Position numbers and translations under genes: made by a program | IMG/VR virus record: IMGVR_UViG_3300008448_000001 | Location: 140,795 to 204,794 of that record | Direction: 5' to 3' (one strand) | Length of the DNA: 64,000 nt | In this document: one piece after another, positions 59,998-63,689 of the stretch | Layout: each line of letters starts with the position of its first letter | Numbering within the stretch: position 1 is the stretch's first letter | Notes under the pieces: model-generated | The model's database searches: none | Told to the model about the DNA's origin: nothing | What the model saw: the letters and a program-made list of their open reading frames with translations, nothing else

Positions 59998-60345
59998 ATG
60001 AAAGTAAAAGGCGGGCCTGCTTCCCGTAAAAAGCAATACCAGCAAGTTCAAATCCCGGATGTGCTCGACGAATCTCTGGCCAACACCCAGCTGACGCTGC
60101 GAACGCAGAACACACTGGAGAAGCACGGGATATGTACTATCCGAGATCTGACCGCAAAAACGGTCGCGGACCTGATGAGCATTCCCAACCTGGGGCAAAT
60201 CACGATTCAGACCTTGCGAGCGTTTTTAGACAGCCTCTGCGTTGCGCACAGGTTGAACGAAAGCGACGAGGTTCAAATACAGACCGCCAAGAAGCGATTA
60301 GACGCACAGAAGCGGAAAACCGCCCCTGTGCAGCCCAAGCAGTGA
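59998..60345 (+). CDS. RNA polymerase alpha subunit C-terminal-domain-like protein
   Basis: LTLRTQNTLEKHGICTIRDL...DLMSIPNLGQITIQ matches the alpha-CTD consensus LSVRSxNCLKxxGIxTIGDL...LLKxxNLGxKS. Confidence 0.85.
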   Translation: MKVKGGPASRKKQYQQVQIPDVLDESLANTQLTLRTQNTLEKHGICTIRDLTAKTVADLMSIPNLGQITIQTLRAFLDSLCVAHRLNESDEVQIQTAKKRLDAQKRKTAPVQPKQ

Positions 60346-61050: not shown

Positions 61051-61953
61051 TTGCCCGGTTATTGCAAAACAATCAAATACCAACCGTCTAGGTTTTGTTT
61101 ACCTTACAAGCTGCTTTCTTCTTGTGTGCTGCACTTGAATCGAAAGCGAAAAGCTTTTCACCGTGTTCTAATGTTTCAGTACCGTTATCGCTTGCAGCTT
61201 AAGTCTTACGTTGCTGCGTTAAACGTTCGCCGTAAGCGTGCGCAACGAGAAGCCGATGAACTGGGTGTTGAGCCGTCTTCGATTGACTCCACGGATTTCA
61301 AAGGTGAGTTTCTTAAACTGGTGCGGCAGTGCAATTGCCCTGCTCCTGGTTGCAGCTACACGCCTTCGCCGCTGTTTCACTGTGGAAACCCTAAAACTTG
61401 CCCGTTTTGTTTTGTTCGACTGCGATTAATCCCTGTTTATGAGGGTGTTATGTCGCTCGGCGAATCTGTTTTAGCTAATTCGATGCTGATCGGCTGGTCT
61501 CGTAAGTGTTCCTTCGAAGATGGTCTACCGTTCTTTTCCCGTAGAACGGGTCCGCACGGGTGGACGAAAGCCGCTTTTAGTGTGCAAGTTGCAGTGCCTT
61601 TTTACGAACGCAAACTGCTGGCGGAACCCGAGGAGATTCGCGGTCGGATTAAAAGGTTCGAGTACCTTCCGGTGATTTTCCACGTTGGACTGCACGTGGT
61701 TCCGGCGGATGGCAACGGGCTGGATGTCTTCCGTAAAAAGCGTGAGGCGTTAAAACTAACGTCGGTGCCTTACGCTTCGTTGGTTGGTTTGAGTCCGGAA
61801 GAGCGTGAGGCCCGTTTGCGCTCCGTTATGCAACAGCTTTTTGCGTTCCGCTGGGAACCGTTTTTCACTCCGGACGCGAAGCTTGTTTTTCGGACGGTTC
61901 ACGATTGTTTTCGGGATCAGAATTTAATTCGTTTTCAAAAGAGGAAAGACTGA
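61051..61953 (+). CDS. Cys-rich hypothetical protein (zinc-binding; start uncertain)
   Basis: CNCPAPGC, CGNPKTCPFC; TGATG-coupled to the next gene. Confidence 0.6.
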   Translation: MPGYCKTIKYQPSRFCLPYKLLSSCVLHLNRKRKAFHRVLMFQYRYRLQLKSYVAALNVRRKRAQREADELGVEPSSIDSTDFKGEFLKLVRQCNCPAPGCSYTPSPLFHCGNPKTCPFCFVRLRLIPVYEGVMSLGESVLANSMLIGWSRKCSFEDGLPFFSRRTGPHGWTKAAFSVQVAVPFYERKLLAEPEEIRGRIKRFEYLPVIFHVGLHVVPADGNGLDVFRKKREALKLTSVPYASLVGLSPEEREARLRSVMQQLFAFRWEPFFTPDAKLVFRTVHDCFRDQNLIRFQKRKD

Positions 61954-63689
61954 TGTCAGAAAGAAACCGTAAAATTGCTGAGTATTTAAAAGCTATTGCT
62001 CTGCTCATCGAAAGCGATTCCGTGTCGCAGACCTGCGAGCAACCGCTCGTAATACCTGAGGGGTGGCGGGAGTTGTCGCCGGATGAGGTGCCAAGATTGG
62101 GGGATATGGCGGAACAGCTGGGTGCTTGGCGTGCGCGGAAATCTGTTGGCAGTAAGGCCTACGAATTGTACGAAGTTCGCCATATTCGCAAAATCGAAAC
62201 CGCCAACCCTTCGGAAACTCCGAATAGTTTGATTCCCGATCCAGGGCCGGGCTATCGGTTGCTGAGCAAAGAGCCACCGGAACCTGTGCGGGAGGGCGAT
62301 GAATTCTGGCAGAAATTAAAGGGGGAGTGGGTTGAGATTGCAGAATTCGTGCACGAAACCCGTCAGCAAGCTCCGTCATACTACTATCGTCGCAAGATCG
62401 AAACCGCCGAAACCGCCAACCCTTCGGAAACTCCGAACAGCTCGACTTGGATTCCAAAGATCGGCGACAAGGTGTGGGTTTCCATACCGGGGCGGGCTGT
62501 GAGCGGGCTTGAGTGCCTTGTGGAAGGCAAATACAGCGAGGGGTATGTCGTCAGTAGCATTTGCGGTTTCTTTAGGTCGACAGGAATTGAAGCAAAAGAT
62601 CTCCAACTGATCGAGGCCGCGAACCCTTCGGAAACTCCGAACAGTTGGGCGCCAGATCCGGGCGAAGGCTATCGGTTGCTAAGCAAAGATCCTTCGGAGC
62701 AAACGATTAAGGGTGATGACATTTGGGTAACGCTTTCCCAGAAATGGATCGAATCCGATGGCTGGAAAACTGTTGGCGGTCCGCAGTCTGCCGGACGATA
62801 TTACCGGAGAAAGCTTGAGCCTGCCGTGCCTGCCGAGTGGGTTCCGAAGACCGGTGACTGGGTGAAGGTCAACAAGCATGTAGGCAATCCCGGTCGAAGG
62901 AAGTATTGGAACGAGCAGATGGACCTTTACAATCACAAGATTGGTTGTGTTTCCGCAGTCAACGTGGATCGCGGATTCGCGACCATTGCAGGTTTCACGC
63001 GAGAAGGCTACTACCATTGGCAGTTTGATTTCGATTGGCTTGAACCTGCAGAAGCCCCTGCCGACCATATTGCCGACGTCAACAAAATGGTCAATCCTTC
63101 GGAAATCCCGAACAGTTCGGCGCCTACCGAGTGGATTCCCAGGGTGGGCGATAAGGTGCGGGTGATAAAACCGGACAGGCGTGTTACCGGCTTAGCTGGA
63201 GTCATCGTTGAAGATACGAAAGGAGAGTACGCAGTGCGTGTTTTAAACGCAAAGCTTACGTCGTATGAACTTGAGGCAAAAGACCTCCAGCTCATCGAAC
63301 CATCTAACCTTCCGGAAACTCCGGATAGTTCGAAGCCCGATCCTGGCGAAGGCTATCGGTTGCTAAGCAAAGAGCCACCGGAGGATTTACAGCCGGGCGA
63401 CGATTTCCACAGCAAAGGAGAATGGCAGCCGTCAGTGAGAGCTAACGACGACATTGCGGAGCAGGATAAGTGCTACTACCGTCGCAAGATCGAGCCTGCC
63501 CAATGGATTCCCAGGGTGGGCGATAAGGTGCGGGTGGTTGGCGTAGCTGATGTTACTCCCGCAGTCGGGATTGTGCGTTCATTGAATCCAAACACTCGCT
63601 GGGCGTATTTTCATTCTGTTTCTAAGGATGGTGGCTATGCTGACTGGTTTCGATTTGAAGACCTTGAACTCGTCGAGGCCGCAAAATGA
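61953..63689 (+). CDS. modular repeat protein (GYRLL..YYRRK and W.PKVGDKV SH3-like domains joined by NPSETPNS linkers)
   Basis: Alternating repeated domains visible in the translation. Confidence 0.75.
   Translation: MSERNRKIAEYLKAIALLIESDSVSQTCEQPLVIPEGWRELSPDEVPRLGDMAEQLGAWRARKSVGSKAYELYEVRHIRKIETANPSETPNSLIPDPGPGYRLLSKEPPEPVREGDEFWQKLKGEWVEIAEFVHETRQQAPSYYYRRKIETAETANPSETPNSSTWIPKIGDKVWVSIPGRAVSGLECLVEGKYSEGYVVSSICGFFRSTGIEAKDLQLIEAANPSETPNSWAPDPGEGYRLLSKDPSEQTIKGDDIWVTLSQKWIESDGWKTVGGPQSAGRYYRRKLEPAVPAEWVPKTGDWVKVNKHVGNPGRRKYWNEQMDLYNHKIGCVSAVNVDRGFATIAGFTREGYYHWQFDFDWLEPAEAPADHIADVNKMVNPSEIPNSSAPTEWIPRVGDKVRVIKPDRRVTGLAGVIVEDTKGEYAVRVLNAKLTSYELEAKDLQLIEPSNLPETPDSSKPDPGEGYRLLSKEPPEDLQPGDDFHSKGEWQPSVRANDDIAEQDKCYYRRKIEPAQWIPRVGDKVRVVGVADVTPAVGIVRSLNPNTRWAYFHSVSKDGGYADWFRFEDLELVEAAK

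Follow-up and report, generated by a model that had tools for sequence, protein, structure and literature searches.

A virus gene assembled from small, repeatedly shuffled protein units carries the same short DNA palindrome, in frame, at the border of one unit after another, and this raises the question whether such linkers are kept for the peptide that they encode or for the nucleic acid itself. The stretch that we analysed (the window, 64,000 nucleotides) makes up the final 64 kb of a virus record of 204,794 bp, IMGVR_UViG_3300008448_000001 of IMG/VR, and the gene, P0001, lies close to its end. We call the palindromic linker E1 and a second palindrome, which adjoins one of its copies, E2. 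Our answer is that paired substitutions maintain the complementarity of the two E1 arms whatever peptide they encode, which is well supported. For what purpose the arms are kept so is a separate matter, on which we tentatively side with a role at the joins between exchanged protein modules.

P0001 is built of three kinds of repeated small unit, W (IPEGWREL...RHIRKIE), A (PDPGxGYRLLSK...YYRRKIE) and B (WIPKxGDKVRV...DLxLIE), and the order along the protein is N-terminal segment, W, E1, A, E1, B, E1, A, B2 (a larger variant of B), E2 directly followed by E1, B, E1, A, B. The original prediction, made from the letters of the window, had placed five palindromic motifs at domain boundaries, at positions 62205, 62418, 62622, 63093 and 63306. 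All five are there on the + strand, and every one falls between repeated W, A or B units and precedes an A or a B. The copies and the gene are as follows, with scores taken from a covariance model derived from RhuM genes that is described below.

61953..63689, + strand: mosaic gene P0001, 578 aa, delimited from the list of open reading frames (ORFs), the repeat families and homologs with shuffled domain order
62205..62229, + strand: E1 copy 1, AACCCTTCGGAAACTCCGAATAGTT (N-P-S-E-T-P-N-S), between W and A1; 20.7 bits, E 0.031
62418..62442, + strand: E1 copy 2, ending in AGCT, between A1 and B1; 24.2 bits
62622..62646, + strand: E1 copy 3, between B1 and A2; 22.6 bits on the + strand, 24.8 bits on the - strand
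63093..63117, + strand: E1 copy 4, AATCCTTCGGAAATCCCGAACAGTT (N-P-S-E-I-P-N-S), degenerate, adjoining E2; 19.5 bits
63306..63330, + strand: E1 copy 5, AACCTTCCGGAAACTCCGGATAGTT (N-L-P-E-T-P-D-S), with the C-G allele at pair 7-19; 25.4 bits, E 0.003, the top model match of the window

The five copies share one frame of the ORF and encode the peptide N-x-S/P-E-T/I-P-N/D-S. A search for the 17-nt core with up to 3 mismatches returned them and one unrelated site in the window, where shuffled sequences would lead one to expect 0.22. Their general form is AAC-NN-TTCGGA-AAC-TCCGAA-NA-GTT. Each copy had been predicted to be an inverted repeat. In copies 1-3, an inner stem of 6 bp (TTCGGA/TCCGAA) encloses a 3-nt centre, and an outer AAC/GTT lies beyond a non-complementary 2x2 stretch (copy 2 ending in AGCT, not AGTT); copy 4 (AAT..TTCGG-AAATC-CCGAA) keeps only 5 inner pairs. 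The whole 204,794-bp genome holds nine E1 copies, all on the + strand and in one frame, in P0001 and a paralog of it; outside these two genes the genome contained no further copy of the motif.

Complementary arms in unrelated genes and frames

We define the E1 family as 25-nt elements with AAC(T) at the 5' end, (A)GTT at the 3' end, about 11 complementary pairs and an A/T-rich centre, and its consensus reads C-AAC(T)-variable arm-A(A/T)(A/T)T-complementary arm-(A)GTT-C. A scan of prokaryotes at one genome per species found at least 120 loci, in most bacterial phyla, in candidate phyla and in methanogenic and alkane-oxidising archaea; counts from collection scans, here and below, are lower bounds. 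Among the matches listed, 97 of 121 E1 copies stand at the beginning of a RhuM-family gene, in phase 2. RhuM genes were also fetched by Pfam profile, as samples of three large groups, to avoid the bias of a DNA search, and a peptide anchor further downstream served to cut out the 25 nt where the RhuM domain begins. In all 31 genes obtained in this way, 9-12 of the 12 pairs are complementary, with DNA and peptide both varying; the peptides include TIRKFRIV, TVRKFRTV, TIKKFLIV, TVKKYLTV, TTEDFSVV, TVSKMETV, TCAKIAQV and THKEFLSV. Over the 31 genes, 94.1% of cells are paired as against 76.1 +/- 1.2% after shuffling, the covariation score is 0.529 as against 0.170, and sliding the partner to other registers leaves at most 44.6% paired. 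Six pairs show double-sided changes, at some of them with all four Watson-Crick types, and at positions 12-14 complementarity is 77%.

A covariance model built from 30 RhuM-gene sites only (R1) was then run on the 64-kb window. The five linkers of P0001 are its five top sites there, with 19.5-25.4 bits (E 0.003-0.06, these E-values being rough for so short a model), and the next, unrelated match reaches 13.1 bits. R1 also detects the element in P1 (36.9 bits), in the paralog (32.7), in a Vibrio phage (30.1), in 720R6 (29.9) and in a helicase gene (29.7); phage copies score 27-37 bits. Since a model that knows only RhuM genes ranks the five linkers first, they can be regarded as somewhat degenerate members of the E1 family; they are mismatched at positions 4, 5, 21 and 22.

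Among viruses, an IMG/VR scan with AACNNTYCGGAAAYTCCGRANRGTT returned at least 114 loci, and its reversed-pattern control none. The commonest form, AACTATCCGGAAATTCCGGATAGTT, is a perfect palindrome about one central base, and the '+' and '-' orientation classes differ only by A or T at this base. In 92 dereplicated copies, pair 7-19 is C-G in 73, T-A in 16 and mixed in 3, a result reached by 0 of 2000 shuffles, although such tests overstate independence in copies that are related by descent. This pair also settles the nature of copy 5 of the window. Its predicted change of T-A to C-G (TCCGGA-AAC-TCCGGA), with S replaced by P and N by D, is confirmed; it is, however, not a private compensatory double mutation, because C-G is the other common allele of the family. 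The centre is AAATT in 80 of the 92 copies. The bases at -1 and +25 tend to be identical and not complementary (GG 36, CC 27, CG 11, GC 10), which is predicted neither by a hairpin nor by a symmetric binding site.

The element is also present in well-known phages: P1 (at the pmgT/pmgU overlap), P7, D6, SJ46, RCS47, many Shiga toxin (Stx) and lambdoid phages, one P22-like phage, and phages of Morganella, Providencia and Vibrio. In E. coli RefSeq, 2416 of 5426 genomes carry it, with a median of one copy, in genes annotated as DUF551, dATP/dGTP pyrophosphohydrolase, DUF550 or RhuM.

A peptide linker confined to one frame would look different from what is found outside the window. Under strict ORF criteria the phases 0, 1 and 2 account for 10, 9 and 5 cases (at metagenomic loci the frame rests on ORF length), and 28 of the 92 copies lie at gene ends or between genes. 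By annotation and Pfam, phase 0 is used in DUF551, in dATP-dGTP_PPHyd and at the Prim-Pol/PriCT_2 and portal/MuF junctions, phase 1 in an SNF2 helicase and phase 2 in RhuM. Intergenic copies stand between yfdQ and ssb in Vibrio phages and after the gene downstream of N in Stx/lambdoid phages. The element thus occurs in all three frames as well as between genes, and its arms covary in genes fetched by protein similarity alone, so that selection at the level of the nucleic acid, or at least maintenance at that level, is borne out as had been proposed.

E1 sits at the borders of Pfam domains. It spans residues 212-220 where DUF551 begins at residue 219, residues 74-83 where dATP-dGTP_PPHyd ends at residue 78, and residues 68-77 where Virulence_RhuM begins at residue 70 (phase 2, peptide TIRKFRIV). 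It further lies between Prim-Pol and PriCT_2, between the portal and MuF domains, and within the SNF2 helicase with Pfam matches on either side. A position at the 5' edge is confirmed for the A and B domains of the window, DUF551, RhuM and PriCT_2, and holds for the MuF part of portal fusions too.

Several single loci deserve mention. At L290:1201-1230 (Vibrio phage 24E30.2) and at L288 and L289:1201-1225 (Stx phage phi296 and mEp213), a mini-ORF consists almost entirely of E1 and reads M/L-N-Y-L-E-F-P-D-S-S-L*; a second form reads M-N-Y-L-E-F-P-D-G-S-L-F-W-Q-Q-T-T-Y-L-R*. In P1 (NC_005856 85195-85219; L284 1501-1525), E1 is read in phase 2 by pmgT as annotated, which continues for another 64 codons over pmgU; the latter is in phase 0 with the element and starts 3 nt past it. 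The homology of PmgT to a Salmonella relative stops at E1, and the overlap could be either an annotation that extends too far or a site of recoding. A pair of neighbouring E1 copies in different phases of a single reading frame (TIRNFRIV...NYSEIPNS) occurs at L472:3096-3163 and also at L074, where 35 nt separate the two.

An IMG/VR scan with an exact 15-mer, TTCGGAAACTCCGAA, mostly gave chance matches or other families and became informative only once the pattern was extended. These families were of three kinds: a conserved gene in opposite-strand reading, hairpin tips in contigs of 2.4-4.2 kb, and palindromes in tandem that resemble operators. In the 2.4-4.2-kb viral contigs, the 15-mer caps a longer covarying stem (ggact/agtcc, ggttct/agaact), at L018, L019, L029, L033, L039, L040, L044, L088, L110 and L115; these are possibly hairpins of small RNA phages, unrelated to the linker. 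The tandem palindromes, GGAAATTCCGAAT-TTCGGAAACTCCGAA-TTTCC, lie in apparently non-coding DNA at L025, L028, L084 and L091.

The second palindrome, the mosaic gene and its relatives

A second palindrome had been noted at 63063-63092, abutting E1 copy 4, and it is real, with 12 of 15 positions complementary. The other features of the gene are listed with it.

62049..62204, + strand: W domain (IPEGWREL...RHIRKIETA), delimited by comparison with homolog sequences
62235..62402, + strand: A domain copy 1 (PDPGPGYRLLSK...YYYRRKIE); further A copies at 62652-62819 and 63336-63494
62399..62416, + strand: 9-nt tandem duplication GAAACCGCC/GAAACCGCC (ETA/ETA), directly 5' of E1 copy 2
62448..62621, + strand: B domain copy 1 (WIPKIGDKVWV...DLQLIEAA); further B copies at 63129-63305 and 63501-63686
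about 62838-63050: larger B variant (B2), with a weak SH3_15 match
63063..63092, + strand: E2, GACCATATTGCCGAC/GTCAACAAAATGGTC (D-H-I-A-D-V-N-K-M-V), core ACCATATT-N12-AAAATGGT
63108..63120, + strand: palindrome CCGAAC-a-GTTCGG (P-N-S-S), overlapping the 3' half of E1 copy 4

E2 belongs to a family of its own, with more than 105 IMG/VR loci and the form ACCATATT-N3-GA.G.CA-N2-AAAATGGT, whose even centre is GAC/GTC (ACCATATT-N3-GAC/GTC-N3-AAAATGGT). Its inner triplets covary (GCT..AGC, GTT..AAC, CCT..AGG, CGT..ACG). Pair 9-20 is of Watson-Crick type in 76 of 85 copies as against 41 expected (G-C 48, C-G 26), and pair 10-19 in 51 as against 31 expected; the central four bases are often non-complementary. 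Within long ORFs, E2 is read in one frame in 16 of 19 cases, and about a quarter of the copies lie at gene ends. It precedes either modules (KMV/PPTGYRLL, KMV/xPEGW) or E1.

The protein itself gave no match above cut-off to any Pfam family, DUF551 and DUF3310 included, or to any PHROG family. An AlphaFold model of the A domain is a confident small beta domain of four strands with a predicted local distance difference test (pLDDT) score of 92.8; against the PDB this fold found no match at E <= 0.001, and an Atlas feature search likewise gave no result. A 101-bp terminal repeat makes the genome effectively circular, and the paralog (638 aa, genome 649-2565) lies just downstream of P0001 across the circular junction, with four further E1 copies and a second E2 motif (DHIADANKMV).

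A word-based protein search found 44 relatives of P0001 in many metagenomes, with W, A and B units in varied orders and, in some, the same cassettes fused to DUF3310 or to DUF4406 plus DUF6378. Their units are joined by shared linker peptides (NPSETPNSS, NTSETPNSS, NCPETPDSS, NCPVIPDSS). The DNA of ten of these genes, obtained by exact protein look-up, uses nearly one codon set for the linkers, AAC NNT TCG/CCG GAA ACT CCG AAY/GAT AGT TCG. Compared with the genes' background, Ser is TCG in 21 of 21 linker positions (background 20%) and Thr is ACT in 23 of 23 (background 21%). Residues across the palindrome go together, S with N or K and P with D; as exceptions, NPPETPN and CCA codons each create a C.A mismatch and TCG for Pro a G.T, NCRVIPD also deviates, and one copy has another perfect stem, TTGGAG-GAAA-CTCCAA. 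A different linker, SELLGS (L166, L168, L170), is written TCCGAG-TTG-CTTGGA, a 6-bp stem with one G.T, a hint that palindromes may also underlie other linkers in this protein family. As a route into IMG/VR, the protein-degenerate pattern RKIE-xx-N-xx-ETP gave only 9 loci and was dropped.

In the vicinity of the gene, a DUF4406 gene lies just past the window end at genome 62-385 (L001:62-382), between the two mosaic paralogs, and the small relatives L167 and L172-L175 repeat the arrangement DUF4406, mosaic gene (with DUF3310), RusA. Directly upstream, a 300-aa ORF at 61051-61953 (+ strand) with a Cys-rich motif (CNCPAPGC...HCGNPKTCPFC) has no Pfam or PHROG match, and its stop codon overlaps the start codon of P0001. 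Further upstream, at 59998-60345 (+ strand), a 115-aa phage protein contains an RNA polymerase alpha C-terminal domain (PF03118, E 5e-11). P0001 also contains a 14-nt inverted repeat, 61960-61973 / 62560-62573, whose arms are 93% complementary and 586 nt apart.

A proposed role at module junctions and the alternatives

What might E1 and E2 be kept for? Being palindromic in any frame and standing at the seams between modules, E1 suggests a joint shared for module exchange. The reading that we prefer, tentatively and with somewhat less than even confidence, is that E1 and E2, both able to form hairpins, serve as junctions, each moving together with the module that follows it, and act as seams of in-frame exchange. 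Modules would pass between phage genes and genes of defence islands at these seams, through recombination over short homologies or through a template switch at the hairpin, the self-complementary joint being able to pair with any other copy. The peptide would be harmless in every frame, as a Pro-rich linker, a Gly/Ser loop or a Thr-Ile-Arg-Lys-Phe-Arg-Ile-Val segment, and the nine E1 and two E2 copies of P0001 and its paralog would mark the joins of strung W, A and B cassettes.

The original prediction had spoken of shuffling joints, and here the positional part stands, with E1 at Pfam boundaries and many coliphage homology blocks beginning at its left edge, while exchange as its role is still a proposal. 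When the DUF551 gene of 720R6 was compared with phages by megablast, about 25 of 60 sampled homology blocks began at query positions 625-633, E1 lying at 634-658; few blocks end at E1. In the window, a 90%-identical A-domain block shared with L173/L174 ends at 62404, by E1 copy 2 and the duplication at 62399-62416, which looks like an offset join of two 'RKIETA-E1' junctions. The presence of the same 25-mer across unrelated genes and frames would be most simply explained by descent through recombination. It is because of the 720R6 blocks, the end of the L173/L174 block, the cassette orders and this shared 25-mer that we favour the junction role.

Several observations weigh against it. No recombination event was directly observed, and breakpoints at E1 could just reflect a linker that is the first part of a mobile domain. 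A patch of homology would need sequence identity, yet the RhuM lineages keep the palindrome and change its sequence, which speaks for the structure, or for template switching that maintains the palindrome, and not for homology. When the ORFs within about 7 kb of 100 E1 loci were clustered, no recombinase or other gene was common to more than 14 of them. Pairs 4-22 and 5-21 are without covariation among the 92 phage copies, and the five copies of the window, folded as RNA, give only weak hairpins (-5 to -10.9 kcal/mol, z -0.3 to -2.4). The codon evidence from the W/A/B family is only suggestive, because domain peptides such as RKIE and GYRLLSK are codon-conserved too and the linkers are not clearly above them. 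Finally, there are signs of specificity for the sense strand, which favour a role in the messenger RNA (mRNA): on the coding strand the flanks at -1 and +25 usually read C...C, and in RhuM genes (L516-L595) they do not vary; and on the RhuM sense strand G.T outnumbers A.C mismatches by 8 to 2, too few to decide.

E1 and E2 might accordingly be mRNA hairpins at module borders that slow the ribosome, protect or process the transcript or bind an RNA-binding factor, the DNA palindrome being a mere template. We consider this rather unlikely, though a serious contender. The covariation of RhuM E1 and of E2 is typical of base-paired RNA, the strand asymmetry just described fits, the centre of E2 is loop-like, and intergenic copies lie inside operons (yfdQ/ssb; downstream of N). 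A generic pause hairpin, however, needs no identical 25-mers across unrelated genes and frames, and positions 12-14 are complementary although they are unable to pair in a hairpin. Positions 4, 5, 21 and 22 do not covary in phage copies, copy 4 of the window folds no better than shuffled sequence (z -0.28), G.T and C.A mismatches are about equal in phage copies, and an Rfam search of six E1-bearing loci found nothing on or close to the element at E <= 1. The palindrome's continuity through the centre, which in E2 is even, would instead suit a putative duplex site for a symmetric dimeric protein, perhaps even the small domain encoded next to it (DUF551, W, A or B) and travelling along; the outer AAC/GTT, set off from the inner arm by two free, non-covarying bases like two contact patches per half-site, and the tight linkage of E1 to DUF551 in coliphages point the same way. 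Yet a dimer that reads sequence does not predict RhuM inner arms that change freely (G-C to C-G, A-T to T-A), the flanks are antisymmetric, no neighbour gene is conserved, and E1 occurs in genomes and genes without DUF551, so that we think such a site improbable. An extended form of the junction reading would make E1 and E2 recombination sites of an in-frame 'domain cassette' system, by analogy with attC: a structure-recognised hairpin with AAC...GTT ends, through which phages and defence islands (RhuM in type I restriction-modification (R-M) loci) of bacteria and archaea might swap modules, P0001 and its paralog then being cassette arrays. This, too, we hold to be unlikely.

The remaining explanations assign the palindrome no function as a joint or signal. 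The original prediction had compared E1 with the mobile palindromes of Rickettsia, and a tiny transposable or inserting element that lands in frame, like a Rickettsia palindromic element (RPE), a repetitive extragenic palindrome (REP) or a miniature inverted-repeat transposable element (MITE), would account for a short palindrome that is stop-free in two frames and occurs in numerous unrelated genes, whatever the frame, as well as at gene ends and in intergenic DNA; the identity of base -1 with base +25 can even be read as a 1-nt target duplication. But no longer direct repeat was found at E1, E. coli genomes have a median of one copy, and 25 nt plus 1 is no multiple of three. Moreover, the SNF2 helicase with E1 does not differ in length at that place from homologs that lack the element, the RhuM element encodes the first residues of a conserved domain, and neither a linked transposase nor a shared neighbour turned up. 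The comparison with Rickettsia hence did not hold; simple insertion of a mobile element is unlikely, and we give this account a very small chance. Could the palindrome be functionless, with intrastrand template switching during replication copying changes from arm to arm without selection and the peptide tolerating them? Templated mutation in quasi-palindromes is an established mechanism (work of Ripley and Lovett), and it would explain the paired two-residue changes, the complementarity through the centre and the two perfect haplotypes TATCCGG.../TGTTCGG.... It leaves unexplained, however, the same 25-mer in unrelated genes and frames across phyla, the position at module edges and the persistence of the element, palindromes usually being lost, and is in our judgement a long shot. 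Least credible of all, with next to no chance, is a mere conserved peptide linker (NPSETPNS) whose DNA likeness stems from recent duplication or gene conversion among repeats, as might be thought from the single frame and strand of the nine genome copies, from the family's domain peptides that keep their codons too and from the frame preference of E2 (16 of 19). The same element is also present in intergenic DNA and in the other frames, S/N and P/D vary together as paired bases do, and a model built on RhuM genes with the peptide TIRKFRIV finds the window linkers; a purely peptide explanation for E1 is excluded.

The usual assumption is that synonymous sites of protein genes are free and that only the peptide constrains a gene, whereas the arms of E1 change together in spite of two-residue changes. 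A 25-nt palindrome is conserved across most prokaryote phyla and their viruses and is read in three frames in different proteins; its carriers include textbook phages (P1, Stx, lambdoid) and about one E. coli genome in two. If the junction reading is true, it offers a concrete, testable mechanism for in-frame domain shuffling in phage accessory and defence genes; if E1 is instead a signal in mRNA or for a protein, genes of the RhuM and DUF551 type contain an unrecognised, very widespread regulatory element. Either way, it bears on annotation (P1 pmgT/pmgU, the mini-ORFs) and on codon recoding and gene synthesis of carrier genes.

Comparison with known systems

The literature that we searched holds no description of E1 or E2, which is no proof that they are undescribed; RhuM is treated there solely as a presumed toxin domain found in R-M and defence loci, or as lying next to hsdS genes that invert. 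Among known elements, RPEs are roughly 100-150 bp long, multi-copy within one genus and recognisable as insertions relative to orthologs. Like E1, they are palindromic DNA that is translated in frame within many unrelated protein genes. E1, in contrast, has 25 nt, is usually single-copy, spans most prokaryote phyla and phages, and showed no length difference in the one case tested. REPs and the bacterial interspersed mosaic elements (BIMEs) that they form resemble E1: they are imperfect palindromes of 20-40 nt that have covarying stems and carry a conserved tag at one end, and they stand at gene ends in operons (PMC3733652). REPs are extragenic, high-copy, lineage-specific and tied to REP-associated tyrosine transposases (RAYTs), whereas E1 is mostly intragenic, low-copy and the same across phyla. 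No gene family was common to more than 14 of about 100 E1 neighbourhoods, a clustering that included no search aimed at PF01797. The palindromic amphipathic repeat coding elements (PARCELs) are coding sequences with dyad symmetry that have spread horizontally and are associated with mobile DNA (PMC2996958). They are, however, tandem repeats of 25 residues (75 nt) that encode an amphipathic domain, while E1 is a single 25-nt border unit read in three frames.

Partly alike is the attC site of integrons. These sites have conserved ends, ...AAC and GTT..., a variable self-complementary stretch between them, attachment to a cassette and strand-specific recognition, of which E1 shares only the AAC...GTT end logic and the conservation of structure over sequence. 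They measure 57-141 nt, contain extrahelical bases and R and L boxes, lie 3' of the cassette ORF and are served by the integrase IntI; none of this was seen for E1, which with its 25 nt is in frame, has no conserved neighbour and is too short for the two-box architecture. Invertase sites (gix/hix, shufflon sfx) are likewise imperfect palindromes of about 26 bp that stand in frame at the border between constant and variable parts of a protein. They come with a linked serine or tyrosine invertase, in inverted pairs and with a 2-bp crossover centre, as opposed to the odd centre of E1 and its nine direct copies in the genome; a linked recombinase or invertase was found neither in the window nor in common to the E1 loci, a resolvase near the gene occurring in one relative only (L168). 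The boundary sequences of lambdoid mosaics, as conceived in the modular theory, are short conserved DNA at borders where homology starts or stops, which is just what E1 resembles; they were proposed to lie between genes and are non-palindromic, whereas E1 and E2 are palindromic, mostly intragenic and shared far beyond the lambdoids. RPEs, REPs, PARCELs, the coding palindromes of Nematomorpha, attC, invertase sites and lambdoid boundaries thus each share some traits with E1 and each fail defining features.

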